Positions 29,365 through 56,172 of a stretch of 64,000 nt of DNA are shown piece after piece (the stretch's first letter is position 1; every line of letters begins with the position of its first letter). Both the position numbers and the translations under genes were made by a program. The stretch is taken from the sequence record KJ019152.1, one strand, 5' to 3'. A model generated the notes under the pieces. The model made no database searches. It was not told the origin of the DNA and worked only from the letters and a program-made list of their open reading frames with translations.

Positions 29365-30118
29365 GGGTTATGTTGTTATTGCACTTGGCGATAAGTATGT
29401 TCAACTCGCCAAGAACTTTGAAGATACACTAAGACAAAACGGTGACAATCGTCCTGTTCATGTTGTAACTGAAGACATGATTGATAAGGATAATGATAAG
29501 TATAGGGACTGTGATGTTCCCAACGAAAGGTATAACTGCTACCCCAAACTTCACTTCAATGAGTATGCGATATTTGATCATAGTATCCTAATCGATGCCG
29601 ATGTTCTGTGCGTAGGTGATACCCAACACGTTTGGGATATGTGTAAAGAACAGGAACAGTTTATTCTTCACCGTGGGTGGGGACAAGTTACTAAATGGAA
29701 TAGAGAACTACAGAAGAAAGTGTGGGACGTTCATGGGTTCGTACCTCCTCGCATTCACGGAGCTTTCTGTTATCTAAGGAAGGCAGATATCAATGAAGAC
29801 TTCTTTGAATTTATCCAAAATAATGTGTGGTTTCAGTATACTGAATGGTGTACGGAAGATGTCAAAGCAAGACATCACAGGTTAAGTAGATCAGACCAGG
29901 TGATATATGCTATTGGTTATGGTAAGTTTGATCTCATGCCCTGTCAGTTAATGGAAGTCCCTATTATGACTCATATATTGACAGCGGCACACGTTAATCC
30001 TCCATACGATAGAATCACTTTTAAGGATCAAATTGGACCCGATTTACAACATCCAGTGGCATTTGCCCATATCGAACAACTATTTCAGGAGAGCACCCCA
30101 GAAAGTTTTCTAAGGTGA
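29357..30118 (+). CDS. GT-A fold glycosyltransferase (GT8-like)
   Basis: YPKLH..FDHSILIDADVL (DxD); SDQVIY motif. Confidence 0.7.
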   Translation: MTEGYVVIALGDKYVQLAKNFEDTLRQNGDNRPVHVVTEDMIDKDNDKYRDCDVPNERYNCYPKLHFNEYAIFDHSILIDADVLCVGDTQHVWDMCKEQEQFILHRGWGQVTKWNRELQKKVWDVHGFVPPRIHGAFCYLRKADINEDFFEFIQNNVWFQYTEWCTEDVKARHHRLSRSDQVIYAIGYGKFDLMPCQLMEVPIMTHILTAAHVNPPYDRITFKDQIGPDLQHPVAFAHIEQLFQESTPESFLR

Positions 30119-30172
30119 CAGTCCACAAACTGGCACACAGGGCTTGGCAACCCTCCAAAAAGGTGCTATACT
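30114..30172 (+). promoter_or_regulatory. Cassette 2
   Basis: GGTGACAGTC-CACA-AACTGGCACA; TTGGCA-17-TATACT; upstream stop TGA inside dyad. Confidence 0.9.
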
Positions 30173-30198
30173 ATCCAAGTAACCAAAGGAAATGATTT

Positions 30199-30420
30199 AT
30201 GAAACCAGCAGAAATTCTCTACGAAATGCAATCCATTCGTAAAGTCTGGCATAATAATAATTTCGTTATCAGTCCCGAACTAAACCGTCGCTATTGTGAA
30301 CTTCTTAAACTCCGCCGTGAACGAGTTTCTCAATTCTATAAAGAGGGAAGGGTCGCTACAGGATCACAGACCCCCGACCTCAAAGCCCGAGAAGCAGCCA
30401 GACAAGCCGAGGTTGGTTGA
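30199..30420 (+). CDS. Hypothetical early protein
   Basis: AAGGA RBS after cassette 2. Confidence 0.7.
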   Translation: MKPAEILYEMQSIRKVWHNNNFVISPELNRRYCELLKLRRERVSQFYKEGRVATGSQTPDLKAREAARQAEVG

Positions 30421-30424
30421 GCCT

Positions 30425-30664
30425 ATGCAGGAACTTCTAGATACTTTCTATACAACCCCCTATGGTGATTTTGCCATTAGAAAGACTCGTTTCGGTGTTC
30501 ATACCTCATATGATCGAGAGGGAACCGATTTGGTGACAGGTTTAGAGTGGATTGACGTATTCACCACCACACCTTGTCACCTACAATGGGAGAAGGAGGG
30601 TTACAAACCCCCCGAAGGTACAGTTCAAGCAACCTATGATAGTGTAGTCTCTGGAAAACTCTAA
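30425..30664 (+). CDS. Hypothetical protein
   Basis: Start refined to ATG 30425; TRFGVHTSYD..VTGL, YDSVVSGKL. Confidence 0.6.
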   Translation: MQELLDTFYTTPYGDFAIRKTRFGVHTSYDREGTDLVTGLEWIDVFTTTPCHLQWEKEGYKPPEGTVQATYDSVVSGKL

Positions 30665-31011
30665 TGGAAGACCGAAAATCACAACTATACAGCATCATGT
30701 ATGATGCCATCAGTGAATTAACTGAGCACGAGAGTGCTGAGGATATCTTTGACAATATTGTAGAGTATTTTGCTCTACGTGTTGAAGAAGCCCGTACTGA
30801 GGTTGATACTTACACGGATATGTTAAACGTATTCCGCAAAGACAACCCAGTGAGAGACGTTCCTAGTGCAGATCCATACAAGAGAACTGAATGGGAACAC
30901 GCATTTGGTGATATGGATGACATCAATCAAACATACATGCCATCAAACCAACACATCTGGAACGAGTTTCTTAAGAATATAAAATTCACGGACAATCAAG
31001 ATACTAAATAA
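30664..31011 (+). CDS. Hypothetical protein
   Basis: Coupled ORF (TAATG). Confidence 0.6.
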   Translation: MEDRKSQLYSIMYDAISELTEHESAEDIFDNIVEYFALRVEEARTEVDTYTDMLNVFRKDNPVRDVPSADPYKRTEWEHAFGDMDDINQTYMPSNQHIWNEFLKNIKFTDNQDTK

Positions 31012-31031
31012 ACACTATCAGGAGAAAAGAG

Positions 31032-31229
31032 ATGACTACTGACCCAAACGATAAGTACGCTAAGTTCAAAGTACCATTTGGCACTAATGAACATCACGAA
31101 GATGATGAATGGGATCCCACAACTGAGGGTAAAATCTCTGATTGGCACAACCGACATCAAGATAAACTCTTAGATGAGTTTTGTGACACTCACCCAGGCG
31201 CACCCCAGTGTAAGGTGTTTGACGACTAA
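31032..31229 (+). CDS. CP12-like protein (C-terminal Cys pair)
   Basis: Ends DEFCDTHPGAPQCKVFDD, like the CP12 C-terminal C-x8-C motif; AGGAG RBS; CTAAATA at 31004. Confidence 0.55.
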   Translation: MTTDPNDKYAKFKVPFGTNEHHEDDEWDPTTEGKISDWHNRHQDKLLDEFCDTHPGAPQCKVFDD

Positions 31230-31231
31230 CA

Positions 31232-31277
31232 AAGTGGCACAAGACCACTTGACAGTACCACATTATTAGGTTACAGT
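31232..31277 (+). promoter_or_regulatory. Cassette 3 (right half-site only)
   Basis: AAGTGGCACA-7-TTGACA-17-TACAGT. Confidence 0.65.
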
Positions 31278-31281
31278 ACAT

Positions 31282-31470
31282 TTGTTCAAGAGGTTTCTCA
31301 TGACTACCGTTGTTGATTCAGAGGTTATCTTTGCTGACGCTTTCAGTGAAGATGGTATAGACTACGGAACTGGTTATTATGTAACTAAGTTCTATAGCAA
31401 TGGTATGACCGACCTATTTGGACCATACAATTTTGAGGAAGACGCCCTCAATCTTGCCACTGTTTATTGA
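31282..31470 (+). CDS. Hypothetical protein
   Basis: ORF track; probable start at ATG after AGAGG. Confidence 0.5.
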   Translation: MFKRFLMTTVVDSEVIFADAFSEDGIDYGTGYYVTKFYSNGMTDLFGPYNFEEDALNLATVY

Positions 31471-31645
31471 TTCCTTCCTTTTTATTATGACTTTTGACAC
31501 CTACGAAGACGAAAGTATCTTCACTATTCTCGGTATTGCCGAAGAAGGTGAAGAAGAAACAGAAAACCCCTATTCCACTGAGGATACTAAAACACTAAAA
31601 GAATATGGCTATTGATTTCTCGTTCATTCTAGGTTTAGTTTTCAT

Positions 31646-31975
31646 TTGGTTGGGACTAAATATCCGTATAGTGAGAGAGGTGGAATAGTGGATTTCAGGG
31701 TAACAGTAAGAACACACACCGGGGCAGTTAGAGTTGTCGAGGTGAGCAACATGCCGAACGAGGAGGCAGCCAGAGCGGAAGCTGTTGGTATGACTTTCGG
31801 TAGGGTTCTGCAGGTTGAGTGTTTAGATGAGATCCCAGAACAATCCAAACCTAAAAAGAAAAGAGGACCAGTTCAAGAGATTGAACGAGAACTTAGACCA
31901 GGTGAAACCGAAACAATTGTAACAGGTTACAATAGCAACCCGTTAGCAGTGTTCTTCACTTTAGATGTTTTTTAG
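31646..31975 (+). CDS. Hypothetical protein
   Basis: ORF track; GAGG RBS suggests a start near 31687. Confidence 0.5.
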   Translation: MVGTKYPYSERGGIVDFRVTVRTHTGAVRVVEVSNMPNEEAARAEAVGMTFGRVLQVECLDEIPEQSKPKKKRGPVQEIERELRPGETETIVTGYNSNPLAVFFTLDVF

Positions 31976-32007
31976 GGGTTGACACACCCCTTTTTTTGTG
32001 CTATACT
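31974..32007 (+). promoter_or_regulatory. Cassette 4 (hairpin promoter without dyad)
   Basis: AGGGGT-TGACAC-ACCCCT hairpin with T-run; TTGACA-17-TATACT. Confidence 0.85.
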
Positions 32008-32028
32008 TATACCAATCGCAGGAGATCA

Positions 32029-32295
32029 ATGGAAGAAAACATGTCGATTTCGACAGAACTTCTAACCAGCATAAACGACGCCATGTATGTTGCCACTAAC
32101 AACGCAGCTACTTACATGCACGGTGATAGAGGTGCTGACGCTATGTGTCTCCTAAACGAGTGGACTACAGAGGATGGTGAATGTTTACTCACACAATATG
32201 CAAAGGGTGAAGTATGTGAGCACATGGGAACTTTCATGTTTATCAACCTAGAAGAAGAAACATGGGGTGAGTTTATTATATCCGATGATGAGTAA
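32029..32295 (+). CDS. Hypothetical early protein
   Basis: AGGAG RBS; start refined. Confidence 0.65.
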   Translation: MEENMSISTELLTSINDAMYVATNNAATYMHGDRGADAMCLLNEWTTEDGECLLTQYAKGEVCEHMGTFMFINLEEETWGEFIISDDE

Positions 32296-32542
32296 ACTAT
32301 ATACTACAGACAATTATTCAGGTACAATGAACCTAACTGAACATCAAAAGATTCAACTCTCACAATTTATTCATGAGTCGTTCTCTACATTCTATGAGGA
32401 GGAACTAAAGTTTCAAGTAGAAACTCTAAAAGATGATGATAAGTTGGATTGGACTTATACAATCACACCAAGAGACTCAGGGGAGATTTATGATAAGGTT
32501 CAGGAATTATTCACACTGGAAAGGCGTGTGACAGTCGAATAA
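32288..32542 (+). CDS. Hypothetical protein ending in the cassette 5 dyad
   Basis: C-term RRVTVE encoded by the dyad. Confidence 0.55.
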   Translation: MSKLYTTDNYSGTMNLTEHQKIQLSQFIHESFSTFYEEELKFQVETLKDDDKLDWTYTITPRDSGEIYDKVQELFTLERRVTVE

Positions 32543-32586
32543 GTGACACAAGGGGGGTTGGCAAACCCCCTTTTTGCTGCCATAAT
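32527..32586 (+). promoter_or_regulatory. Cassette 5
   Basis: TGTGACAGTC-GAAT-AAGTGACACA; TTGGCA-17-CATAAT; G-run/C-run hairpin with T5. Confidence 0.9.
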
Positions 32587-32608
32587 ATACTCATACACAC
32601 AAAGACCC

Positions 32609-32737
32609 ATGAACGTCCCCAACTGGCAGAAGCACTCCAAGAAAGACCAGAAGGGTCGCGGAGTGAGCAAGGGTCAGATGAGAGCCCGCAAACAGGCTCT
32701 ACGTGCCCTGAAGGCAAAGCTCCTTGTGACAGTCTAG
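32609..32737 (+). CDS. Small basic hypothetical protein
   Basis: MNVPNWQKHSKKDQKG...; stop inside cassette 6 dyad. Confidence 0.65.
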   Translation: MNVPNWQKHSKKDQKGRGVSKGQMRARKQALRALKAKLLVTV

Positions 32738-32784
32738 GAAGTGGCACAAGCCCCCTAGGCAAGACCCCCAAACCCTGCTATACT
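32725..32784 (+). promoter_or_regulatory. Cassette 6
   Basis: TGTGACAGTC-TAGG-AAGTGGCACA; TAGGCA-17-TATACT. Confidence 0.9.
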
Positions 32785-32807
32785 AAACACATACAAAGGA
32801 AACCACC

Positions 32808-33218
32808 ATGGCTCGTCACTCTGAAGTTCTCATCCAAGGCACCGAGGTTCCCGGTCTTCGTATGATCGTAACCGTTCCAGTCGATCACACCTGGGCATCA
32901 GAAACCGCCCGTAGCATCTACGGATTCGGTGGCAACACCCAATACATCTGGCGGAAGTCTTGGGAGACTAACAAACCCGCTCCCCGTGGTGGTGGTGGTT
33001 CGTCCTCCTCCTCTGGCATGGGTCCTGGAGCTATCCTGATGGGGATGATTGGTCTTATCCTGGTTGCTGGTATTGGTTCCGCCTTCGAGGGTAACGACAC
33101 CCCCTCAGCTCCTTCCTATGACGCTCCCGCACCTGTTGAGAGGTCATACGTTCCACAGGCACCCGCAGCCTCCTATGACAATGGCCCTTGTCTCACCGCT
33201 AACTTCGAACCTTGTTAA
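32808..33218 (+). CDS. Membrane-anchored hypothetical protein
   Basis: GGGGSSSSS linker, then hydrophobic GAILMGMIGLILVAGIG. Confidence 0.65.
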   Translation: MARHSEVLIQGTEVPGLRMIVTVPVDHTWASETARSIYGFGGNTQYIWRKSWETNKPAPRGGGGSSSSSGMGPGAILMGMIGLILVAGIGSAFEGNDTPSAPSYDAPAPVERSYVPQAPAASYDNGPCLTANFEPC

Positions 33219-33219
33219 T

Positions 33220-33393
33220 ATGAATGACTTTCGCCCCCCGCATCACACCACTACTAAAGAAGAGTGGGAGTTTATTTTCCAAACACAGATACATAACTGC
33301 GCCCAACTAAAGAACACAGAACTCCAACGTTTTGTGTGTGTAGATAGTACGGGCAACAAAACTACCAAATATGTTATAGAATACAATGACTGA
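33220..33393 (+). CDS. Hypothetical protein
   Basis: Start refined to ATG 33220. Confidence 0.5.
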   Translation: MNDFRPPHHTTTKEEWEFIFQTQIHNCAQLKNTELQRFVCVDSTGNKTTKYVIEYND

Positions 33394-33676
33394 AAAAGAA
33401 GTAGAGCTACACTTTGGGAGTGAGTATGAGGCTGGCATTGACTATGGGGATAGTGATGATTCAGACATTTTAGACTACACCAAAGAAGTAAGTGTCACAC
33501 TAACCCGTTCAGATTGGAATTGGTTTGTTACACTGATGTCAGACTCCGTTAATAAGATGGAGGCTGCAGTTTCTGCACAAGGTATGGATGCTGAGTCCTT
33601 CCTTTCTATTGATGTTCTTCGCACTATTCGTAATGAAATCGCAACTCAGAGTGGGCTCACTCAATACATTGATTGA
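33386..33676 (+). CDS. Hypothetical protein
   Basis: Operon-like packing. Confidence 0.6.
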   Translation: MTEKEVELHFGSEYEAGIDYGDSDDSDILDYTKEVSVTLTRSDWNWFVTLMSDSVNKMEAAVSAQGMDAESFLSIDVLRTIRNEIATQSGLTQYID

Positions 33677-33677
33677 G

Positions 33678-33950
33678 ATGCCAGTAGTGGCACCTAAAGG
33701 TTATCACTATGAGGCAGTAGAACACAAACAAAACGTAGTGGCTATTTGGTTATGTGGAGGTCCAACATACCTCTACAAGATGGGAGAAACTGCTAGAACT
33801 ATTCACTCCTTCTATAATATTAAGAAGAAAACCTGGTATGCACCTATCAACTGCAAGAAGCCAGGTAAGGAGGTATCAGTGGATAAGATACGACCTTACA
33901 CATCAATGCAACTGAACTACAACCCTCTGGAGATGCTACTATATGGCTAA
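33678..33950 (+). CDS. Hypothetical cyanophage protein
   Basis: APKGYHYE..IWL..WYAPIN.KKPGKEV..RPYTSMQLN. Confidence 0.7.
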   Translation: MPVVAPKGYHYEAVEHKQNVVAIWLCGGPTYLYKMGETARTIHSFYNIKKKTWYAPINCKKPGKEVSVDKIRPYTSMQLNYNPLEMLLYG

Positions 33951-33985
33951 ATATATGTTATAATATCATAACATATATCACGAAT

Positions 33986-34207
33986 ATGAAGTCCAAAGAC
34001 CAATACAAGAAAGAGTTTCAATTCACACTGAATACATCTGATGATAAGATCGCGGAAGAGAATATTCTTCACGATTTCGCCAGAGAGGTTTCAGTTATTG
34101 ATGCTTTCCTACAAGGTGGGAAGGTATCACTAAAGGAGGCAAAACAGCGTATCAAAGATGTATACAAAGTGTGGAAGAACTCACTGAAAAACAACAACCA
34201 AATGTAA
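33986..34207 (+). CDS. Hypothetical protein
   Basis: GGKVS..EAKQRIK..YKVWK. Confidence 0.6.
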   Translation: MKSKDQYKKEFQFTLNTSDDKIAEENILHDFAREVSVIDAFLQGGKVSLKEAKQRIKDVYKVWKNSLKNNNQM

Positions 34208-34594
34208 ATGGAACCTTTCCTGCTAATGGCTGTTGATGTAGCTGAATCTTCACCTTCTAGAAAGAAGGTTGGAGCTGTTCTAATGAATAAGAACAAAGTT
34301 ATAGCAACAGCCACAAATCATGATTGTAAATCACACCCTCTACAAGCAAAGTGGGCAGAACGTGTGGGACTATCTGAAAAGATATATCTACACGCTGAAA
34401 TGTCAGCAATGATCAAAGCTCGTGATGACTCAGACAAAATCGTTGTAGTTAGACTAGGAGGACATTCTGGTCACGAACTACGACAATCTCGTCCTTGTCC
34501 TATATGTGAATCATACCTGAAACATTCAGGCATTGAACATGTATATTATTCCACTGGGAATAACAAATTTACCTATGAATACTGGGGGAAATGA
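34208..34594 (+). CDS. Cytidine/dCMP deaminase-fold zinc protein
   Basis: HAE and PCPIC zinc motifs; KVGAVL. Confidence 0.85.
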   Translation: MEPFLLMAVDVAESSPSRKKVGAVLMNKNKVIATATNHDCKSHPLQAKWAERVGLSEKIYLHAEMSAMIKARDDSDKIVVVRLGGHSGHELRQSRPCPICESYLKHSGIEHVYYSTGNNKFTYEYWGK

Positions 34595-34791
34595 TGGAAA
34601 CGTTCACAGCAACTTGTCCCAAAGACTACGACAGACATCACTATTCAGTTGTCAACAAAGACGGCACGAATAGGATGTTTAGTAGTTGGGAACTCGCACA
34701 GAGTTACTGGTGGCATACTAACAAACTTGGCACACTATCACACATCGATGTGATAGACTATAAAGAACAATCAAGAGGTTTTGGAGCATGA
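34591..34791 (+). CDS. Hypothetical protein
   Basis: YDRHHYSVV..WELAQSYWW; overlapping start/stop. Confidence 0.6.
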   Translation: MMETFTATCPKDYDRHHYSVVNKDGTNRMFSSWELAQSYWWHTNKLGTLSHIDVIDYKEQSRGFGA

Positions 34792-35006
34792 ACATGTTGG
34801 GTAAACAATCAGAGACTGGGATGAAAGTAACCTTTCTTGGTTATATCCCAGAACAAGTGAAGTTCGCAGGATCTGACACACCAGACAAACTGAATACCAC
34901 TACAACATATACCATTGAACAGGTAAAACGATTCAACTCGTATACCAAGATCAAACTAGTTGGTGATGATCTGTGGTATAATTCAGTTCACTTTAGAGTT
35001 ACTTAA
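34788..35006 (+). CDS. Hypothetical protein
   Basis: ATGA coupling. Confidence 0.6.
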   Translation: MNMLGKQSETGMKVTFLGYIPEQVKFAGSDTPDKLNTTTTYTIEQVKRFNSYTKIKLVGDDLWYNSVHFRVT

Positions 35007-35206
35007 TGGATAACATCTATGGGCGTGAGTATCACAGACATGCTGTTGATTACGCTCTGATGATAGGTGAGTTAGAAGGAACTTACACTCACCTGAAACG
35101 AATGTCTTACTTTGAGGATGCTGCTATCCTTGAAGAAATGAAGAAACGTTACTACAAGATCTACTTCCGTACCTTACGTGAAGAAAGAGAAAAAGCAGAA
35201 AACTAA
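35006..35206 (+). CDS. Hypothetical protein
   Basis: TAATG coupling. Confidence 0.6.
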   Translation: MDNIYGREYHRHAVDYALMIGELEGTYTHLKRMSYFEDAAILEEMKKRYYKIYFRTLREEREKAEN

Positions 35207-35224
35207 CCTAATTGAGGATTTTGA

Positions 35225-35533
35225 ATGGTGTTAACTTGGACCGACGAAGAGAAAGTAAACCTAACCCGTGCAGAGGTTAGTATTCATGGGGAGAATATCA
35301 CTCCAGATAAACTAGACAACAAAACTCTACCAACAGATATTCATGTCATTGAATATGAGATGGAAGGTGTAACTTACTACGACGCGGTTCGTGCCTACAA
35401 AATGGTTAGCATCTTTGATGTATATCACGATAAGCTAAAAGGTGGTGGTAAAGTTGTTAGAATCACCAATGGGTATGGTAGCATTAGACCTAACCTGTGG
35501 AACAACAATAAGAGTGAGAAAGGTGATGAGTGA
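35225..35533 (+). CDS. Hypothetical cyanophage protein
   Basis: GAGG RBS; LPTD..IFDVYHD..GYGSIRPNLW. Confidence 0.7.
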   Translation: MVLTWTDEEKVNLTRAEVSIHGENITPDKLDNKTLPTDIHVIEYEMEGVTYYDAVRAYKMVSIFDVYHDKLKGGGKVVRITNGYGSIRPNLWNNNKSEKGDE

Positions 35534-35705
35534 GAGGAAGTCTGAGGACTGGATTAGTGAGTGGAAAGGAATGAATGATGAGTTCATTGAAGAAGACACT
35601 ATGTTCAGACTTGACATTCCTTCCACTGAAAAGACACAAGAATGGATGGATAGAGAACCATTAATCTTAAAAGTAGATCACTCGAAGTATTATTTTGATG
35701 ACTGA
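35526..35705 (+). CDS. Hypothetical protein
   Basis: Start refined to ATG 35526. Confidence 0.5.
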   Translation: MSERKSEDWISEWKGMNDEFIEEDTMFRLDIPSTEKTQEWMDREPLILKVDHSKYYFDD

Positions 35706-35901
35706 AGAAGATCCAATGATCAACTGGAAACAGAAGATGATGAAACATTGCACCCACGATTGGGAAAAGCAACTATTACGTGAAGGTGCCACATCATCTG
35801 TGACAGCAATGGGTATAATGTCACTAAAGAAACGATACAAAAGGATTATGGGTATTGATGATGATCCAAAGCCACCTGTAGTTCAGTACGCCTCCTATTG
35901 A
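35695..35901 (+). CDS. Hypothetical protein
   Basis: ORF track; packed in operon. Confidence 0.55.
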   Translation: MMTEEDPMINWKQKMMKHCTHDWEKQLLREGATSSVTAMGIMSLKKRYKRIMGIDDDPKPPVVQYASY

Positions 35902-35907
35902 TACTTT

Positions 35908-36367: not shown

Positions 36368-36393
36368 ACAGAGGTAAACAACGGGAACCACCC

Positions 36394-49320: not shown

Positions 49321-49332
49321 ACCTGCTATACT
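49273..49332 (+). promoter_or_regulatory. Cassette 24
   Basis: TGTGACAGTT-GGGA-AAGTGGCACA; TAGGCA-17-TATACT. Confidence 0.92.
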
Positions 49333-49356
49333 AAACACATACCAAAGGAACCAACC

Positions 49357-49554: not shown

Positions 49555-49583
49555 TCACTAACTCACCACACTAACTAACAACT

Positions 49584-49865
49584 ATGACACGCACTCCAAT
49601 CACAGTTACCCTCAAGCGTAGCGAATGGGAATGTTATACAGACACTCCTGATACTATCATCGAAACTATCAACTCATACTTCTCTTATGTGTTATCAACT
49701 AAAGATAACGCGTTTGATGCACAGTCTGAGATATTCAAGTTTCTGAATATGTTTAGTGAGTTTGGGTTTATGGATAGTGAGTGCCTAGAATGTGCAACTA
49801 GAGTCATCAACAGATATTTCGATTCATACCTCTCCCGATGGAGCCAGATAGGTGTGACAGTCTAG
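49584..49865 (+). CDS. Hypothetical protein
   Basis: FSEFGFMDSE; stop in cassette 25 dyad. Confidence 0.65.
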   Translation: MTRTPITVTLKRSEWECYTDTPDTIIETINSYFSYVLSTKDNAFDAQSEIFKFLNMFSEFGFMDSECLECATRVINRYFDSYLSRWSQIGVTV

Positions 49866-49912
49866 GAACTGGCACAAGGGGGGTTGGCAAGACCCTCCAC
49901 ACCTGCTATACT
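49853..49912 (+). promoter_or_regulatory. Cassette 25
   Basis: TGTGACAGTC-TAGG-AACTGGCACA; TTGGCA-17-TATACT. Confidence 0.92.
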
Positions 49913-49937
49913 ATATTCATACCAAAGGGAACCACCC

Positions 49938-50528
49938 ATGACCATTTTTCTAGAAGACTACCTCCTCACCTCTTTCGCCAATAACCGTTCATCAAAGAGA
50001 ACTGATGATCTGAATGTGGCTCTTCTAAATGAGTTTCTAAATGAGTATCCTGAATACGCTGAACTAGAATGGAAGTTTGAAATACCTCTACCCGATGCCT
50101 ACGGTGCTACCTTCAAAGTAGATGCTGTGGGGTTTGAAGGTGATACACCTAAAATCGTTCTTCTCAATAAAAACGCTAACTCTAACTTCGCTCAGAATAT
50201 GAAAAACTACGCTAATACCAGCGTAGGTGAAGCCGCCCGAGTTCTGTTAGGCCCCATTGGTGAAGATGTAGAGAAAGTGTTCTTTATTACTGTTCATCCT
50301 AACTACTCACCTTTTTTCAAAAGTGATGGTTCTGTGAGTAGAATTGAAAATGTATGGAAGGCTAAAAAGAGAACCAATGTTGAATCTGTTCTGAAAAAGT
50401 TGTATGGTAGTAAAGTATCTACAATTACCTATTCATTTGATATCAACGAAATCAATGAGTTCTCTACTAAAACTCAGTTTCAGGATGGTATTACTATCTC
50501 TAACCTAAACTTTCATCAATGTGTATGA
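49938..50528 (+). CDS. Putative restriction endonuclease-like (PD-(D/E)xK-fold) protein
   Basis: FEIPL..FKVDAV..LLNKNANSNFAQN; directly upstream of a DNA MTase. Confidence 0.35.
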   Translation: MTIFLEDYLLTSFANNRSSKRTDDLNVALLNEFLNEYPEYAELEWKFEIPLPDAYGATFKVDAVGFEGDTPKIVLLNKNANSNFAQNMKNYANTSVGEAARVLLGPIGEDVEKVFFITVHPNYSPFFKSDGSVSRIENVWKAKKRTNVESVLKKLYGSKVSTITYSFDINEINEFSTKTQFQDGITISNLNFHQCV

Positions 50529-50540
50529 TATAATAAAGAT

Positions 50541-51311
50541 ATGAAGAATCAACTAATCAACGGCGAATGTTTAGAAGTCATGTCCACACTTCCTGATGGT
50601 TGTGTGGACATGGTGTTCTGCGATCTTCCTTATGGGACAACCCAAAATCATTGGGATGTTGTTATACCCTTTGATGATTTGTGGAAGCAATACAATAGAG
50701 TCGTAAAGGAAAATGGTGCTATTGTTCTCACAGCACAGTCGCCCTTCGACAAGGTGCTTGCCTGCTCTAATCTGAAAGAATTTCGTTATGAATGGATATG
50801 GGAAAAGAATAAGGCGACAGGACACTTAAACGCTAAAAAGATGCCAATGAAGGCACATGAGAATGTGTTAGTTTTCTATCGCAAACTACCCACATACAAT
50901 CCACAGAAAACAACAGGACATAAGCCTTTTGGTGCTGTTAAACCGAGAGATAATATCCCTGAGCCAGAGAAGAAGAGAAACTACAATCACCTCAGCAAAA
51001 CATATGGAAACGATGGCAATACCACTGATAGGTATCCTCGTTCTGTTCAGAAGTTTCCTGTTATTAACAATGATGACCCTCGTAAGTTTCATCCAACCCA
51101 GAAGCCAATTGGAATGATAGAATACTTTATAAAGACATATTCCAATGAGGGTGATATTGTGTTAGATAATTGTATGGGTTCAGGTTCTACCTGTATCGCT
51201 GCCAATAACCTAAACAGAGGATACATTGGAATTGAAAAAGATAAAGACATTTATCAGATGGCATCTGATTGGTTCAAAACAGAAACAACGCTAACACAGT
51301 TCATGTCATAA
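50541..51311 (+). CDS. DNA N6-adenine/N4-cytosine methyltransferase (beta class)
   Basis: DMVFCDLPYGTT (motif IV), HPTQKP, VLDNCMGSGST (motif I). Confidence 0.93.
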   Translation: MKNQLINGECLEVMSTLPDGCVDMVFCDLPYGTTQNHWDVVIPFDDLWKQYNRVVKENGAIVLTAQSPFDKVLACSNLKEFRYEWIWEKNKATGHLNAKKMPMKAHENVLVFYRKLPTYNPQKTTGHKPFGAVKPRDNIPEPEKKRNYNHLSKTYGNDGNTTDRYPRSVQKFPVINNDDPRKFHPTQKPIGMIEYFIKTYSNEGDIVLDNCMGSGSTCIAANNLNRGYIGIEKDKDIYQMASDWFKTETTLTQFMS

Positions 51312-51326
51312 TAGGAAGGATACCCA

Positions 51327-51386
51327 TGTGACAGTTGGAGAAGTGGCACAAGCCCCCTAGGCAAACCCCTCAGGGGGTGCTATACT
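51327..51386 (+). promoter_or_regulatory. Cassette 26
   Basis: TGTGACAGTT-GGAG-AAGTGGCACA; TAGGCA-17-TATACT. Confidence 0.92.
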
Positions 51387-51408
51387 ATATTCATACCAAA
51401 GGAACCAA

Positions 51409-51726
51409 ATGAATTTCAGAACACTAGCACTCACCACCACCCTGGCTCTCTCCACTGTCCTAGGTGGTTTGGCTCCTGAAGCTAAGTCAGCTGACTTTTG
51501 TGACAACATCCCCGGCAACTCGGGATACGTTTGTGTTACCATGGGTCTCTGGTTCGACTTGGTTGAGGCAGACATACCCGCCTTTGGTGGTAAAGAGTCA
51601 TTACACATCACCTGTGACGGTGGCTGGTCCTACCGTTCGAATGGCAACTGGAACAAAGACGCCGCTTCCCTTGTGGCTAAGGAATACTGTGAAGGTGCTG
51701 GCTGGAACAGCCACTCCGAGGTGTGA
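51409..51726 (+). CDS. Exported 4-Cys protein
   Basis: Signal peptide ending AKSA; similar to 46250; stop in cassette 27 dyad. Confidence 0.75.
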   Translation: MNFRTLALTTTLALSTVLGGLAPEAKSADFCDNIPGNSGYVCVTMGLWFDLVEADIPAFGGKESLHITCDGGWSYRSNGNWNKDAASLVAKEYCEGAGWNSHSEV

Positions 51727-51781
51727 CAGTTGAGGAAGTGGCACAAGCCCCCTAGGCAAACCCCTCCATACCTGCTATACT
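51722..51781 (+). promoter_or_regulatory. Cassette 27
   Basis: TGTGACAGTT-GAGG-AAGTGGCACA; TAGGCA-17-TATACT. Confidence 0.92.
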
Positions 51782-51803
51782 ATATTCATACCAAAGGAAA
51801 CCA

Positions 51804-52070
51804 ATGTTCCCACACCTCCACATCTCTGAATCAAACCTCGGACCTCACACCTCCATGTTTTTCAAAGTATCATCACAACCACAAGATGAGTGGCAGAATG
51901 GCATTTTCCATAACTCACCTTATGGCATCTTTCACCTTCATTCTGAGAAAGGTGTTTATAAGTTGGAACTATCTTCCTCAGGTTTGAATACTCCTAAGTT
52001 TCGCAAGTGTAAGTGTGAAGATGAACTTACCGCACTCACTAAGATTCGTCAGTGGATGGATAAGTTCTGA
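51804..52070 (+). CDS. Hypothetical cyanophage protein
   Basis: EWQNGIFHNSPYGIF..KLELSSSG..PKFRKCK. Confidence 0.75.
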   Translation: MFPHLHISESNLGPHTSMFFKVSSQPQDEWQNGIFHNSPYGIFHLHSEKGVYKLELSSSGLNTPKFRKCKCEDELTALTKIRQWMDKF

Positions 52071-52105
52071 TATTATCTAACACAAACCACTCACAACAAA
52101 CTATC

Positions 52106-52279
52106 ATGAACCGACTAGAACTACTGACCCAACGTGAACAACTGATGGAGAGGATTGACTCTATCTGTGATGAATTCTTTTATAAGAACTATAATGGAGA
52201 TACGTCAGAAGCAGATGAATTAGTTCGTATTCTATGTGATGCTGTTTGTGAAACCATAGACCCAGCGGGCATGGTGTGA
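52106..52279 (+). CDS. Hypothetical protein (57 aa, not in ORF track)
   Basis: MNRLELLTQREQLMERID..LCDAVCE; stop in cassette 28 dyad. Confidence 0.6.
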   Translation: MNRLELLTQREQLMERIDSICDEFFYKNYNGDTSEADELVRILCDAVCETIDPAGMV

Positions 52280-52333
52280 CAGTTGGACTAGTGGCACACG
52301 TTTCTCCGCAAACCCCTCCTCACCTGCTATACT
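52275..52333 (+). promoter_or_regulatory. Cassette 28 (TCCGCA subtype)
   Basis: TGTGACAGTT-GGAC-TAGTGGCACA-6-TCCGCA-17-TATACT. Confidence 0.88.
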
Positions 52334-52358
52334 ATATTCATACCAAAGGAAACCGACC

Positions 52359-52622
52359 ATGTTCCAAGTCTGTACCGAAGACGCTCTAGATCACCGCTAC
52401 ACAATTGATGAGTTTGAGACACTGGAAGAAGCCCAATCTTGTTATAACGAGTGTGTGAAGGTTGGAGCTGAGGGTTATGAGATTTCGGTTGAGTTAGAGG
52501 AAATCATTGGCGATCATGATGATTACGTTTCCATCGAGTTCACCGAGTGGTTTACACAAGAGAGTTGGGAGGAAGCACATCCATGGAATGATAAGGAAGG
52601 AGTTTGGGAGAACGTTGACTGA
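52359..52622 (+). CDS. Acidic hypothetical early protein
   Basis: AAGGA RBS. Confidence 0.7.
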   Translation: MFQVCTEDALDHRYTIDEFETLEEAQSCYNECVKVGAEGYEISVELEEIIGDHDDYVSIEFTEWFTQESWEEAHPWNDKEGVWENVD

Positions 52623-52623
52623 C

Positions 52624-52683
52624 TGTGACAGTTGGAGAAGTGGCACAAGCCCCCTAGGCAAACCCCTCCATACCTGCTATACT
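52624..52683 (+). promoter_or_regulatory. Cassette 29
   Basis: TGTGACAGTT-GGAG-AAGTGGCACA; TAGGCA-17-TATACT. Confidence 0.92.
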
Positions 52684-52710
52684 AAACACATACCAAACAA
52701 AGGAAACCAA

Positions 52711-53052
52711 ATGACCACCACCCAAACCAAAACCGAGTTCCTCACCGAGGCAATGATCGAACAGGTGAACAACCTCTGGAAGGTTTATAACGTGGAGTCA
52801 GGTCACACCATCACCCCACTTCTTAAGTATGAAGTGGCTAAGAAGTACATCAAGGTCTATCGTTTAGACGTTGTGAATGGTGAGATTCGTGACGGTCGTT
52901 CAGTGTTTATGTTTATCGATAAGGAGACTGGTGCAGTTCTGAAACCAGCCTCATGGAGAGCACCCGCTAAGGGTATCCGGTTCTACATTGAACAGTTGGC
53001 TGAGTCTCCTGAGCTCGTGGATCAGTATGGTAGTTTCCTCTACCGTCGCTGA
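52711..53052 (+). CDS. Hypothetical phage protein
   Basis: KKYIKVY..RSVFMFIDKETGAVLKPASWRAPAKGIRF; start refined. Confidence 0.75.
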   Translation: MTTTQTKTEFLTEAMIEQVNNLWKVYNVESGHTITPLLKYEVAKKYIKVYRLDVVNGEIRDGRSVFMFIDKETGAVLKPASWRAPAKGIRFYIEQLAESPELVDQYGSFLYRR

Positions 53053-53112
53053 TGTGACAGCCACCAAAGTGGCACAGGGGGGCTAGGCAGCTCCCCCTCT
53101 TTATGCTATACT
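53053..53112 (+). promoter_or_regulatory. Cassette 30
   Basis: TGTGACAGCC-ACCA-AAGTGGCACA; TAGGCA-17-TATACT. Confidence 0.88.
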
Positions 53113-53134
53113 ATATTCATACCAAAGGAACCCG

Positions 53135-54388
53135 ATGAGCTTCACCCTTCGCCCTCACCAAACAGAAGCACTTCAGGCGATGGCTGAGACCCGTCTTGGC
53201 ACGGTGTTAGTTCCAACTGGAGGAGGCAAAACACTGATAGCCATCATGGACGTTGTTCGTTCCCTAGAGACCGCAGGAACCCCTCAGACTATCGTTGTCG
53301 TCGCTCCCCGTATCCTTCTAGCCCAGCAACTCTGTAGTGAGTATATGGAGGTTCTGAGTGATAGGTTCGCCAACGTTATCCCCGCCCATATCCATTCAGG
53401 TCATACACCCCACTTCTCTACCACTAACATTCAGAAGATTCATCTCTTTGAGAAGATGATGGATACCGCCAACCTTCACCGTATATACTTCACCACATAC
53501 AACTCACTTCCACGTTTAGCAGAAGCAGGTGTAAGTGTCGATACTATTATGTTTGATGAGGCACATAACTCGACTCGTAATGACTTCTATCCCGCTACTA
53601 AGTATTTCTCACAAACCGCTAGTCGTTGTTACTACTTTACAGCAACTCCCCGCCACTCTGTAACATCCAAGAGACACGGAATGAACGAGTCTGATGTATA
53701 TGGTCAGGTCATCTACAATGTTCCTGCCCCTACACTTGTACAAGGTGGTTTCATCATCCCCCCACAGGTTCGTGTTAAAGAGATGGAGTTCGTAGCTAAA
53801 CATGAGCTCATCTCACAACGTGATACAAACCACCTCATCTCCTGTATTGATGACAACCACACGAGCAAAGTTCTAGTTTGTGCTAAGTCAGTCAAACAGA
53901 TCATGCGTATGTTTAGTGAGACCGATATCAGCCAACAACTTGATGATCGTGGTTTCTCCTATATGTACATCTCAGCTAAGACTGGTGGTGTTATCAATGG
54001 CAAGAAAGTATCACGTACTATGTTCTTCGATACTCTAAACGAGTGGGGTAAGGATAACAACAAGAAGTTCATTGTTCTTCATCATTCTATTCTCTCTGAG
54101 GGTATCAATGTAAGTGGTCTAGAGTCCGCTATCTTCTTACGTACTATGGATCATATCACTATCTCCCAAACGATTGGAAGAGTAATAAGATTACATAAGG
54201 ATGATGCCCAAGGTATGAGAGATGGTTCTATTCGCCCTGGTGATCTTAACTCCTACACCAAGTCGTTTGGTTTGTGTATTGTTCCAGTTTATTCTAAAAC
54301 ACAACAAACAGTTGCCAAGTCTCTTCAGGCAGTTGTTAATACCGTCTTTGTGGAAGGTGAAGCAGCAACCACAGTTGTGAGGCGTTAG
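53135..54388 (+). CDS. Superfamily 2 DEAH helicase (ResIII-like)
   Basis: LRPHQ Q-motif, PTGGGKT Walker A, DEAH, TATP, SEGINV, QTIGRVIR. Confidence 0.92.
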   Translation: MSFTLRPHQTEALQAMAETRLGTVLVPTGGGKTLIAIMDVVRSLETAGTPQTIVVVAPRILLAQQLCSEYMEVLSDRFANVIPAHIHSGHTPHFSTTNIQKIHLFEKMMDTANLHRIYFTTYNSLPRLAEAGVSVDTIMFDEAHNSTRNDFYPATKYFSQTASRCYYFTATPRHSVTSKRHGMNESDVYGQVIYNVPAPTLVQGGFIIPPQVRVKEMEFVAKHELISQRDTNHLISCIDDNHTSKVLVCAKSVKQIMRMFSETDISQQLDDRGFSYMYISAKTGGVINGKKVSRTMFFDTLNEWGKDNNKKFIVLHHSILSEGINVSGLESAIFLRTMDHITISQTIGRVIRLHKDDAQGMRDGSIRPGDLNSYTKSFGLCIVPVYSKTQQTVAKSLQAVVNTVFVEGEAATTVVRR

Positions 54389-54496
54389 TATGAATTATCA
54401 AAACCAAGCTCTTGTGATACTTCTAGGTCTAATGTTCATAGCTGGTATTAACGTACTTCACTATGAACAACAATGGCAATGTAGGATGCATCAAAC

Positions 54497-55207
54497 CTAT
54501 TGTTTTGTTTCTGAATAATACCATAGGTAACCCTTCCAACGCGAACCCCATTTGATAGAAGTACAAATACCCTTCCCACGATCCTCCTCATTAAAGGATC
54601 TCATCGCATCACTAATAGAATCAAAGACGGGAGTAACATGACCAGTCTTATGAACTCCATAGACTTGTTTCTTATTCTTAGCGTGTTTATGAATCCACCA
54701 TTTGTAACCATATGCCGAACCCTCTCTTGTGATACTTCTCCTGATATTTGATGGCCTACCATTCACATACTCAGCGGCAGCAACCCAACCATGAAAGGTT
54801 TTGATCTTACCCGTTTCCAAGCACCTACACTTGATGACGTTCTTATCATGTTTCTTAGGTTTCTTCTTTCGTTGATAACCCCATCTCCTATCCCCTTTAT
54901 GATATGACTCTTTATTATTCAGCTTCCTAGTCTTATGTTCTAACACCAAATTGTTATACTCAGGGTTATACTTATTCATCCAATATTCCACTCGTTCAGT
55001 AAGCTTATTCTCATTCACTTCTTCTAGTATACGTATAGTAAAGTCATCGGAGTTATAGTAAGATAAGGCATTACTCAGTGGAGTATTTTCCTCCTTATGA
55101 TTTTCCAATATCCCAGCCCAAACTTTATTCAGGGGAAGCGTATCATAACCGATGTATTTGTGAGAGGTTTGTCTATTCAAGATGATGTAGATGTTTGTGA
55201 TGCTCAC
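54497..55207 (-). CDS. GIY-YIG family protein with C-terminal NUMOD1-like repeats (Seg-like, probably inactive)
   Basis: NIYIILN..HKYIG and YN motifs; two C-terminal HTH-like repeats ending GYKW/GYLW; only - strand gene in the region. Confidence 0.7.
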   Translation of the reverse strand: MSITNIYIILNRQTSHKYIGYDTLPLNKVWAGILENHKEENTPLSNALSYYNSDDFTIRILEEVNENKLTERVEYWMNKYNPEYNNLVLEHKTRKLNNKESYHKGDRRWGYQRKKKPKKHDKNVIKCRCLETGKIKTFHGWVAAAEYVNGRPSNIRRSITREGSAYGYKWWIHKHAKNKKQVYGVHKTGHVTPVFDSISDAMRSFNEEDRGKGICTSIKWGSRWKGYLWYYSETKQ

Positions 55208-55587
55208 GGGAAATAGTCTCTATTCTGGTTGTATATATAAACATTATCTTTTTTTATCACATGTGTTTGTTTATCTCCCTTATGAATGTTATAATAGAAA
55301 GGAAGAGATAAAGATGAATAACCAATGGAATTACCTAGGTAAGAGTTATCTAATAGAAGGAACTAATGAATACAATAACCAATGTAATCACCTAAGAGAA
55401 GGTAACACTAATCCCCTATACAATACCCCTTATAATAGTATCATATAACGAGGTCTTTACAGCTCACTAAGCTCCTCCTAAACTCCACTGCCCGTTGCAA
55501 CCTAAGCCCGTTATAACACGGGACTTCGGAAAAGTCAAGGGATCTCCGAAAAACTTAATATTTCCGAGACACCCCAGACACCCACGG

Positions 55588-55633
55588 AACTGGCACAAAC
55601 CCCCTTGGCAAACCCCCCGAAATGGCATATACT
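55588..55633 (+). promoter_or_regulatory. Cassette 31 (right half-site)
   Basis: AACTGGCACA-7-TTGGCA-17-TATACT. Confidence 0.85.
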
Positions 55634-55658
55634 ATATTCATACACAAGGGAACCACCC

Positions 55659-55892
55659 ATGGAATTCATCCAAACTGACTACCCCGCTAACATGGCTCCC
55701 AATGTTATGGAGAGGAACTATGGTCGGGGTATCATCCTGACTCAGGTCAATGAGGATGGTGTCATTCCATTCTCAGTATTCAATTTCAAAAAAGAGGATT
55801 GGAACTGGGGAGCTGACTACTACATGACCGAGCATAACTTTTATACACTAGAAGAGGCAGAGGCGGTAGTGACTCAGCTCGTAGCCAGCTGA
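55659..55892 (+). CDS. Hypothetical early protein
   Basis: Start refined; stop in cassette 32 dyad. Confidence 0.65.
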   Translation: MEFIQTDYPANMAPNVMERNYGRGIILTQVNEDGVIPFSVFNFKKEDWNWGADYYMTEHNFYTLEEAEAVVTQLVAS

Positions 55893-55940
55893 ACCACTGT
55901 CACATGGGGGCTAGGCACAGCCCCCTCTATACCCTATACT
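55881..55940 (+). promoter_or_regulatory. Cassette 32
   Basis: GTAGCCAGCT-GAAC-CACTGTCACA; TAGGCA-17-TATACT. Confidence 0.82.
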
Positions 55941-55966
55941 ATATTCATACACAAGGGAACACCCCC

Positions 55967-56125
55967 ATGACCAAAGCAACTCAGAGACCTTCCACCCAGA
56001 GCCGTTACACCAGCCAGGTAGCCCGGGACCGTAAGGCGGCAGCACTCCAGAGGGCTGAGGAGCGTCGCCTCACTGGCTCATGTGGAGTGGATCAGGTGAA
56101 CCGCCTCTACACTGTGACACTCTGA
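55967..56125 (+). CDS. Small basic early protein
   Basis: Start refined; stop in cassette 33 dyad. Confidence 0.6.
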   Translation: MTKATQRPSTQSRYTSQVARDRKAAALQRAEERRLTGSCGVDQVNRLYTVTL

Positions 56126-56172
56126 TAACTGGCACACAGGGGGTTGACAATACACCCCCATGGCTCTATACT
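56113..56172 (+). promoter_or_regulatory. Cassette 33
   Basis: TGTGACACTC-TGAT-AACTGGCACA; TTGACA-17-TATACT. Confidence 0.9.

Follow-up and report, generated by a model that had tools for sequence, protein, structure and literature searches.

A conserved palindrome ends putative promoter cassettes in the hyperplastic region of a T4-like cyanophage

Results

A palindrome that recurs through a 64,000-nucleotide stretch of DNA (the window; bases 1-64000 of KJ019152.1, from Synechococcus phage ACG-2014f, a T4-like cyanomyovirus) is the upstream, distal end of a regulatory cassette of 80-87 bp that stands before about 30 small gene groups. We consider it likely, overall, that the dyad ends a promoter cassette, that tight packing of genes explains the stop codons found in it, and that homologous recombination between copies explains gene gain and loss. 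The setting is a hyperplastic region of about 90 small ORFs on the plus strand (27228..59477, between a tail-fiber-like gene and gp25), where 30 of the 33 dyad-promoter units in the genome are found; such units also precede cobS and psbA.

A search with the pattern TGTGMCAS-N8-STGKCACA, allowing up to two mismatches, returned 27 dyads, all within 27235-56136, against 0.31 expected from shuffled sequence. The dyad itself thus exceeds chance by a wide margin. Three additional degenerate copies, at 31218, 55574 and 55881, carry three mismatches, and three half dyads keep the right arm only. The original prediction had described 8-bp arms around an 8-bp spacer. Across 167 copies, however, T occupies position 9 in 85% and position 10 in 74%, and A occupies position 15 in 85% and position 16 in 92%. 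None of these four positions belonged to the search pattern. The dyad is a 24-bp palindrome with 10-bp arms and a 4-bp centre. Sequence homology among the copies starts sharply at dyad position 1.

Downstream of the palindrome the anatomy is fixed across 30 copies, and 25 of 27 copies have their ATG 80-87 nt from the start of the dyad. A sigma70-type -35 element (TTGGCA or TAGGCA) lies 7 nt past the palindrome, followed by a 17-bp spacer, often with TG ahead of the -10 element (TATACT), and then by the ATG after a leader that is about 25 nt long and contains a ribosome-binding site. By this layout the palindrome would span about -66 to -43 of the cassette promoter. From their sequence we infer that the cassettes serve as promoters of the small gene groups in the hyperplastic region and of cobS and psbA, and they may also have terminator and early-timing roles. 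About one-third of the copies carry, separate from the dyad, a GC hairpin and T run around the -35 element, which may terminate upstream transcripts. Cassette 27235..27326 is an example (dyad 27235-27258, -35 at 27265, -10 at 27288, with hairpin and T run), and a promoter at 31976..32028 has the hairpin and T run without a dyad. Two of the half cassettes, each a right arm plus promoter, are 39861..39937 (-35 at 39880), where the TGA of the upstream gene replaces the left arm, and 45956..46023 (-35 at 45972). All of these units, and all those named below, are on the plus strand.

We compared stop positions with the annotated CDS ends of KJ019152.1. The original prediction had placed the ends of upstream genes in or at the dyad, and all 21 positions that it listed were correct. 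Seven are TGA codons at dyad positions 3-5, ending at 30118, 36312, 39537, 46723, 47027, 51726 and 52279 (respectively cassettes 30114..30198, whose dyad has one mismatch; 36308..36393, with hairpin and T run; 39533..39617; 46719..46802; 47023..47107; 51722..51803; and 52275..52358). Eight stops lie deeper: 32542 (32527..32608, with hairpin and T run; protein tail VTVE), 32737 (32725..32807; tail VTV), 36771 (36757..36838; one mismatch), 42379 (42367..42448; tail VPV), 45724 (45722..45808; two mismatches, with TAG replacing the first three dyad bases), 49865 (49853..49937; tail VTV), 55892 (55881..55966, a degenerate dyad with three mismatches) and 56125 (56113..56196, which has the best -35 match, TTGACA, and precedes an unannotated 53-codon ORF at 56197). 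Beyond that list, a stop at 31229 lies inside the dyad of cassette 31218..31299, whose left arm has decayed to three mismatches.

Stops abut the dyad at 42043 and 53052 (0 nt; cassettes 42044..42127, with hairpin and T run, and 53053..53134, before the helicase gene) and at 52622 (1 nt; 52624..52710), and we add a near-abutting one at 40189, 2 nt before the dyad of 40192..40271. Read-through tails end at 43548 (43515..43598), 46200 (46167..46249) and 49320 (49273..49356, where ORF 49009-49320 passes through both the dyad and the -35 region). Other upstream stops end short of the dyad, at 27227 (7 nt before the first cassette), 40439 (9 nt before 40449..40532) and 51311 (15 nt before 51327..51408). 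Cassette 48575..48655 follows 157 nt of annotated non-coding DNA, and 38747..38852, which has a long leader, follows 172 nt of non-coding DNA. Another long leader, with 120 nt to the ATG, belongs to 37578..37697; the annotated CDS that reads through this cassette, 37507-37641, is doubtful. A further degenerate dyad, with three mismatches, heads cassette 55574..55658.

These overlaps had been taken as the signature of a special junction, but they do not exceed what genome compaction produces. Of 27 gene pairs with a dyad, 18 have the stop inside it, and the gap is zero or negative in 25 of 52 dyad-free pairs of the same region (Fisher p=0.15). Upstream ORFs reach or enter the palindrome because the genome leaves almost no spacer, and they do so in all three frames (8:7:5, counted over overlapping ORFs), so that TGA at positions 3-5 represents merely one frame in three. 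An ORF entering the palindrome ends at the first stop offered: one frame meets a TGA, and another often meets a TAG or TAA in the centre. ORFs meeting neither read through. The shared dyad-encoded C-termini are real (VTV, VTVE, VPV, TPQEVAQAS and TPGKLAQDP), and these tails are incidental: in US52, a 3-nt indel gives one gene the ending ...VM, where the window has ...GVTV. Nor were C-termini truncated and replaced at the dyad in the single family compared, that of gene 49009-49320, whose last 15 residues are cassette-encoded in the window; its conserved core reaches the dyad intact, and variable tails of 0-15 residues extend beyond.

The dyad-promoter layout recurs in P-RSM4 (11 copies in 19 kb) and S-RIM8, in both of which the helicase gene also has an upstream unit, and in many uncultured cyanophage contigs the dyad holds the same position ahead of lineage-specific promoters. 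Among 167 units from unrelated cyanophage contigs, the -35 element begins 5-8 nt (mode 7) past the dyad in 147. The arm sequence is kept across lineages, and identity over the 58 nt downstream of the dyad is 49-59% within a lineage and 28-48% between lineages (four compared). The fixed distance between dyad and promoter before helicase, psbA and cobS across genera points to a role in transcription.

One alternative is that the upstream transcript closes with an RNA stem-loop formed by the dyad, serving as a terminator, stabilizer or processing site, like the "SL" of the promoter-early stem-loops (PeSLs) of other T4-like phages. The position of the dyad at ORF 3' ends, directly before a promoter, resembles that of PeSLs (PMC2839356, PMC4122927), and some variants can form eight pairs with one mismatch (segment 49843-49886). 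However, folding of the dyad was no more stable than that of shuffles (z = +0.67, -0.07 and +0.12), it has no U tract, and it matched no Rfam family. Base-pair covariation was not found in the dyad (78.6% of cells paired, versus 78.3% in shuffles); of 49 distinct copies, 28 lack a pair at positions 5/20 and 32 lack one at 8/17, and in the 167 copies A/C and G/T at positions 5/20 match independence. Lineages conserve the arm sequence itself rather than just its pairing, and the separate strong GC hairpin and T run of some copies suits a terminator role better. We therefore regard a stem-loop as unlikely, and the palindrome is probably not an RNA hairpin. With neither covariation nor a stable fold, and with its constant position before promoters, the palindrome looks like a protein-binding site, most likely a putative double-stranded site for a dimeric host or phage factor. 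No HTH protein was detected among the 20 ORFs scanned.

To follow gene exchange, we compared the window with six relatives. Of 62 indel ends, 22 fell in cassette zones, which cover 9.5% of the region (p=3e-8), with the proviso that events shared by descent are not independent. Both ends lay in cassettes in 8 of 31 indel events, and neither end did in 17. The dyads had been proposed as borders of exchangeable modules, and differences in gene presence or replacement do often end inside cassettes. Their left edge had also been proposed as a precise crossover point; instead, crossovers are spread over the whole cassette, with intervals in either dyad arm, past the -10 element and within the leader; several cassettes are three-way mosaics.

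Individual cassettes illustrate this exchange. Cassette 36308..36393 is the site of a one-gene insertion in isolate C34, with its crossover in the left dyad arm, and of a 3.5-kb replacement in C90; four relatives lack the gene just upstream (35908-36312), and their junction falls at the left-arm TGA. Both this loss and the C34 insertion have their junctions precisely on the left arm or its TGA, and they count against our main explanation. A 2.8-kb deletion in C19 has cassettes 39533..39617 (left) and 42367..42448 (right) as partners, and a 212-bp deletion in US52 and US13 has 40192..40271 (left) and 40449..40532 (right). Cassette 42044..42127 is wholly absent in US52, US13 and US42, where the flanking genes overlap by ATGA; this cassette-free junction of gene 41498-42043 diverges from 17 nt before the dyad, off its edge. 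Four relatives lack cassette 48575..48655 together with gene 48656-49012, an isolate-specific Dam module (49938-51311) lies exactly between cassettes 49853..49937 and 51327..51408, and 52624..52710 is a one-gene insertion site in C19 and US42. Across the seven genomes we saw no module that had moved to another position.

Discussion

The exchange pattern at the cassettes supports cassette-mediated gene shuffling, and homologous recombination is the mechanism that we infer for it. About 30 direct copies of an approximately 85-bp sequence within 30 kb would supply portable homology, which the recombination system encoded by the phage (UvsX, UvsY, UvsW, gp46/47 and gp32) would use. Exchanges anywhere in the cassette would delete, insert or swap the intervening genes, as has been proposed for PeSLs.

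Two other mechanisms would give the palindrome itself a role in the exchange. If it were the core site of a tyrosine or serine recombinase (of the phage, or host XerCD), cassettes would be inserted and excised precisely; the format of arms around a central spacer, the sharp onset of homology at position 1, the two left-arm junctions and the cassette-flanked Dam module all fit such a reading, and the three right-arm-only half dyads could also be products of crossover inside the dyad. The scattered crossovers and three-way mosaics argue against it, as do the cassette-free junction 17 nt ahead of the dyad, the fixed distance from dyad to -35 and -10 before conserved genes across genera, the absence of displaced modules, and the presence in each unit of its own promoter, unlike integron cassettes. 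The earlier observation that the window shows no recombinase also holds: the annotation of 289 CDS includes no tyrosine or serine recombinase, and Pfam detected none in the region's ten largest ORFs. We judge site-specific recombination very unlikely; scattered crossovers, the negative search for a recombinase and fixed promoter spacing leave the integron-like, precise-site reading of the original prediction unsupported. Alternatively, the palindrome could be the target of a dimeric nuclease, for example of the homing type, whose breaks drive repair-mediated exchange of neighbouring genes. A 10+4+10 pseudo-palindrome is the target format of homodimeric homing endonucleases, HNH and NUMOD1 genes are present in the region and differ between isolates, and indel ends are enriched at cassettes. 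However, a phage carrying about 30 targets would destroy itself unless they were protected, the dyad is conserved across genera while endonuclease genes are sporadic, and the fixed promoter spacing is left unexplained; we know of no nuclease with this specificity and give this reading hardly any credence.

Dimeric bacterial regulators bind operators upstream of -35 elements, including 24-bp TetR-type palindromes and the TGTGA/TCACA half-sites of the CRP type. By analogy, the cyanophage dyad may resemble such operators in its palindromic form (10-bp arms, 4-bp centre), in conserving arm sequence rather than pairing, and in its fixed position relative to the promoter, although its half-site spacing does not fit CRP (N6). 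As in integron attC cassettes, the upstream stop often lies in the repeat, and the repeats bound exchangeable, mostly single-gene modules of unknown function. Unlike integrons, the cyanophage system lacks an annotated integrase, a folded single-strand attC structure and one fixed crossover point; each unit has a promoter, whereas integrons use one common promoter, and the repeat is 24 bp rather than the 57-141 bp of attC.

The closest known elements are the PeSL cassettes of coliphages RB49 and phi1 (Arbiol et al. 2010, PMC2839356), for which the authors had already drawn the integron analogy. Both are short composite units that span from the upstream stop to the next ATG, with a sigma70-type promoter and a ribosome-binding site, and occur as many direct repeats in hyperplastic regions of a T4-like genome. 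In both, indels and replacements between relatives end inside the units, with crossovers at various points, and no dedicated recombinase is known. They differ in that the cyanophage dyad makes a poor terminator hairpin (weak fold, no U tract, no covariation) and is a 24-bp palindrome conserved over several genera at a fixed distance from the -35 element, and in that the terminator-like GC hairpin is separate, optional and wraps the -35. For RB49/phi1, mini-circles have been shown, as has promoter or terminator activity (PMC2839356); for the cyanophage cassettes, such activity is predicted from sequence. The PeSL and PmSL papers cover T-even, pseudo-T-even and schizo-T-even phages, unlike the present cassettes; in cyanophage S-PM2, PeSL density was judged too low to matter (PMC4503421), and our literature search found no description of these cassettes or of the palindrome in cyanophages. 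With the PeSL/PmSL elements of T4/PST and KVP40/nt-1 (Comeau et al. 2014, PMC4122927), the cyanophage cassettes share a common architecture built from lineage-specific sequence, half or degraded elements beside indels, and highest density in the most variable segments.

Palindrome-promoter cassettes in the hyperplastic region

KJ019152.1 is the 221,396-bp genome of Synechococcus phage ACG-2014f isolate Syn7803C25, a T4-like cyanomyovirus (Kyanoviridae, Atlauavirus). The window comprises its bases 1-64000, since positions 30000-50000 agree with it at 100% identity and under equal numbering. Its hyperplastic region consists of about 90 small plus-strand ORFs extending from a tail-fiber-like gene (ending at 27227) to gp25 (starting at 59478). 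The 24-bp palindromic repeat at the center of the original prediction (the dyad) is borne out: 27 copies with no more than two mismatches all lie within 27235-56136, against 0.31 expected from shuffles, with three more, degenerate copies at 31218, 55574 and 55881. The whole 221-kb genome contains 33 dyad-promoter units, 30 of them between 27.2 and 56.2 kb. Only three lie outside the hyperplastic region, at 114488 (preceding cobS), 156412 and 171127 (preceding psbA), and at all three the stop codon of the upstream gene abuts or lies within the dyad.

A common layout was found in 30 units, which we refer to as cassettes and name by the start coordinate of the dyad. The -35 element (TTGGCA or TAGGCA) starts 7 nt past the dyad, at dyad+30/31, and the -10 element (TATACT) lies at dyad+53/54 after a 17-bp spacer, often with TG ahead of it; a leader with a ribosome-binding site (Shine-Dalgarno) and then the ATG follow downstream. 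The promoter, terminator and operator functions of cassette parts discussed below are putative assignments made from the sequence. Dyad start and ATG are 80-87 nt apart in 25 of 27 copies. Longer leaders occur in the cassettes at 37578-37697 and 38747-38852, where the ATG lies at 120 and 106 nt, respectively; these two have in common a G-rich segment after a weak -10, and a similar variant occurs in S-RIM8. Two cassettes follow a similar non-coding stretch of about 130 nt, at 38639-38770 and 48468-48598 (74% identity across 134 nt including the dyad), and in no other cassette does the upstream non-coding DNA exceed 150 nt. An unannotated 53-codon ORF (56197-56358) has its ATG at the standard distance after cassette 56113.

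Stop codons in the dyad and the C-termini of upstream proteins

All stop coordinates in the original prediction are annotated CDS ends. The TGA occupies dyad positions 3-5 in seven cases; the stop lies deeper within the dyad in eight of the cases first reported and also at 31229, abuts it in three (with a further stop, 40189, at 2 nt distance), and is preceded by read-through of the dyad in three. The shared dyad-encoded tails VTV, VTVE, VPV and TPQEVAQAS are likewise real. These overlaps had been taken to indicate integron-like insertion junctions, with the proviso that a frequency matching that of a compact genome would count against the idea. Such a match was found: the stop lies inside the dyad in 18 of 27 dyad-bearing pairs, and the gap is zero or less in 25 of 52 dyad-free neighbor pairs (Fisher p=0.15). 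Moreover, overlapping ORFs enter the dyad in all frames (8:7:5), so that the TGA class is merely the one-in-three frame in which TGTGA gives a stop. In the second frame many copies have TAG or TAA in the center, and the third frame is open, which gives rise to the read-through tails. Homologous genes in different isolates enter the dyad in different frames, and the gene at 49584-49865 ends in ...GVTV here and in ...VM in the ACG-2014f isolate US52. Overlap is also common elsewhere, since the annotated upstream CDS overlaps 9 of 11 dyads in P-RSM4, and in uncultured cyanophage contigs the nearest long ORF ends more than 2 nt upstream in only 16 of 161 dyad-promoter units.

The further proposal that C-termini were truncated and replaced at the dyad is contradicted in the one family tested. 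The gene at 49009-49320 reads through both the dyad and the -35, its last 15 residues being cassette-encoded. The protein collection contains 46 relatives of it, of which most are 87-94 residues long and cover 86-91% of the query. In the family alignment an invariant core ends at a Cys encoded by dyad positions 1-3, and the tails beyond it vary from 0 to 15 residues. Among distant relatives, the codon for this Cys is followed by a decayed dyad, by a left arm that lacks its right arm, or by unrelated sequence and then a terminator-like hairpin. This pattern indicates that the protein was extended by read-through, with its core intact. For the gene at 29357-30118, a tblastn search against phages gave no relatives outside the ACG-2014f isolates, so that its C-terminus lacks an outgroup. 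Residues that the dyad or promoter adds to a C-terminus are a by-product of read-through and should not be interpreted as conserved protein motifs.

Recombination at cassettes

Comparison of the region in KJ019152.1 and in six further ACG-2014f isolates (C19, C34, C90, US13, US42 and US52) identified 31 distinct events of at least 100 bp, and 22 of their 62 ends fall in cassette zones that span 9.5% of the region (binomial p=3e-8, although events related by shared descent are not independent). Both ends lie in cassettes in 8 events, one end in 6 and neither in 17. The module at 49938-51311 (a hypothetical gene and a Dam methylase), for example, is bounded by cassettes 49853 and 51327; it was not found in any other of 50,697 phage records, and variable modules were not found at other positions in the seven genomes or elsewhere in KJ019152.1. 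The segment 56589-57069, 481 nt without an annotated gene or an Rfam match, is also replaced between isolates. A single gene of the region lies on the minus strand, 54497-55207 (-). It carries the annotation 'cox1-i7 protein', matches NUMOD1 weakly and differs in length among isolates (711, 636 and 522 bp); its product is probably a free-standing homing endonuclease.

The left dyad edge had been proposed as a precise crossover point, but crossovers also occur in the right arm, past the -10 and in the leader. Three-way alignment of hybrid cassettes places the crossover of a 2.8-kb deletion in C19 in or just after the right arm. Those of a 212-bp deletion in US52 and of the left side of a replacement in C90 lie between the -10 and the ribosome-binding site, and that of a one-gene insertion in C34 lies in the left arm. 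At 49.9-51.3 kb and 52.6 kb the junctions are mosaic and include a third -35 segment variant. In general, the upstream gene carries along the left arm and center, and the downstream gene carries the promoter and leader. Half dyads that retain only the right arm (39861, 45956 and 31230) imply that the left arm can be replaced by upstream coding sequence at various points. One junction does favor the left edge: the gene at 35908-36312 is missing in four relatives, in which the gene before it has its TGA fused to that of the dyad. This junction is a 3-nt microhomology that leaves an imperfect left arm, and is therefore most simply explained as a deletion. Pointing the other way, cassette 42044 is absent in US52, US13 and US42, and divergence begins 17 nt before the dyad; the protein encoded upstream ends in ...SEQLG without the cassette, overlapping the next ATG, and in ...SEQLDSRY with it.

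The dyad was also compared with two site-specific systems. Integron cassettes are promoterless and read from a common promoter, in contrast to the units described here, each of which has its own -35 and -10. Nor does the dyad resemble attC, an imperfect palindrome of 57-141 nt that is folded as a single strand, as it comprises only 24 bp and its pairing is unsupported; and instead of the single conserved crossover point of integrons, the left arm, the right arm, the sequence past the -10 and the leader are all used. No IntI-type tyrosine recombinase was found next to the array: the annotation of the whole genome (289 CDS) lists no integrase or recombinase, and Pfam detected none in the region's ten largest ORFs. 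Recombination genes that are encoded are UvsX, UvsY, UvsW, gp46, gp47, gp32 and gp59. The core of an Xer/dif-type site, two arms around a 6-8-bp spacer, is superficially similar to the dyad; however, the dyad has 10-bp arms and a 4-bp center, and crossovers are not confined to this center. Half dyads also occur.

The dyad as a putative protein-binding site

At least 120 IMG/VR loci matched the dyad in a scan, and among those listed 70 have three or more dyads and no megablast similarity to the window; three loci that were checked are relatives of S-RIM8, P-TIM40, S-TIM4/P-RSM4, S-SRM01 and S-SKS1. Dyad positions 9-10 and 15-16, which were left free in the search pattern, proved to be conserved among 167 oriented units, with T in 85% and 74% and A in 85% and 92%, respectively. 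The site is therefore organized as 10+4+10, rather than as the 8-bp arms and 8-bp spacer originally suggested. The -35 begins 5-8 nt past the dyad in 147 of the 167 units.

A palindrome of this kind could act either as an RNA hairpin or as a double-stranded site. Positions 5/20 and 8/17 vary independently in the 167 units, paired combinations being as frequent as independence predicts, and no covariation was found among 55 copies from five lineages (78.6% paired cells vs 78.3% in shuffles). Predicted RNA folds of the dyad were no better than those of shuffled sequence (z = +0.67, -0.07 and +0.12), and the dyad has neither a U tract nor the GC-rich stem and U tract of an intrinsic terminator. 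The arm sequence is kept across genera. For the 58 nt past the dyad, identity is 49-59% among units of one lineage and 28-48% among units of different lineages, four lineages having been compared. P-RSM4 has a poor -35, yet the distance from dyad to -10 is preserved. In three genera a dyad-promoter unit stands in front of the helicase gene, and the gene upstream of the unit differs in each. From this pattern we infer that the dyad is probably not a hairpin but a double-stranded binding site of a dimeric factor, centered near -54.5. More specifically, and with a little less than an even chance in our judgment, the palindrome would be the operator of one regulator, of host or phage, that turns the full set of early-type promoters on or off in many marine T4-like cyanophages. 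Because each small gene group has a copy of the unit in front of it, the unit would double as portable homology for the exchange of accessory genes.

In cassette 46719, the dyad center and right arm can pair with sequence just 3' of the dyad (46728-46751; 9-bp stem, z=-3.3), and this stem was not found in other copies of the same -35 variant. A separate GC hairpin was detected in 9 of 30 cassettes by a simple G-run/C-run test, and 13-15 elements were counted by eye, half and dyad-less elements included. Its loop is the -35, and a T run follows in about six elements. This hairpin folds strongly and is detected by a terminator scan, and around the -35 at 27259, 32551, 36332 and 42068 it has the predicted form of an intrinsic terminator (GC-rich stem and U tract).

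MotA, AsiA, Alt and Mod, on which T4 relies, are not known from marine T4-like cyanophages. A sigma-70-family protein of 230 residues with Pfam regions 2 and 4 is encoded outside the window, at 139000-139692. The -35 (TAGGCA/TTGGCA) and -10 (TATACT) of the cassettes deviate from consensus, and this phage protein is a candidate reader. A sigma-54 reading of TGGCAC...GCA was rejected, as the GG-to-GC spacing is 13 rather than 10 and as sigma-54 is, as far as we know, absent from cyanobacteria. CRP or NtcA sites were rejected for the wrong half-site spacing. An extension of the motif to position -1 was rejected as well, as G, present there in the six ...V-TGA cases, occurs in only 34% of 201 copies. 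Rfam gave no match at a relaxed threshold across 27-60 kb. In bacterial genomes, exact matches to the palindrome pattern number more than 120, with about 17 expected by chance as a rough estimate. Among the matches listed, many are in Acidobacteriota (Terracidiphilus, Pyrinomonadaceae, Bryobacterales) and Nostocales; the genes beside them belong to small recurrent families, with no recognizable regulator and no informative Pfam match.

Relationship to known systems

Marine T4-like cyanophages are some of the ocean's most abundant viruses, and most of their unknown genes sit in hyperplastic regions. The cassette provides a concrete, sequence-defined unit at which such genes are gained and lost, and across several genera its conserved palindrome lies at a constant position ahead of early-type promoters. 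If the palindrome is the binding site of a regulator, the timing of early transcription in these phages would become directly testable.

In the literature searched, neither the cassettes nor the palindrome was described for cyanophages, apart from two remarks: a report of uninterpreted motifs upstream of psbA in cyanomyoviruses (PMC5931967), and the judgment that promoter-early stem-loops (PeSLs) in the cyanophage S-PM2 are too sparse to matter and such shuffling unlikely (PMC4503421). Shuffling of the PeSL type is known so far from enterobacterial and vibrio phages. Among known systems, the most similar one is the PeSL cassette of RB49/phi1, T4/PST and KVP40/nt-1 (PMC2839356, PMC4122927), for which an analogy to integrons has already been drawn (PMC2839356). 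Adjacent PeSLs of RB49/phi1 also recombine to give small circles. Like PeSLs, the 30 units here are composite intergenic elements (dyad, sigma70-like promoter, Shine-Dalgarno and ATG) concentrated in the hyperplastic region of a T4-like genome; indels and replacements between close relatives end in them at variable crossover points, without a known dedicated recombinase. Unlike the PeSL, the cyanophage dyad does not appear to be a credible terminator stem-loop. The GC hairpin and T run are instead a separate feature here, present only in a subset of copies, whereas the dyad is a sequence-conserved palindrome common to several cyanophage genera.
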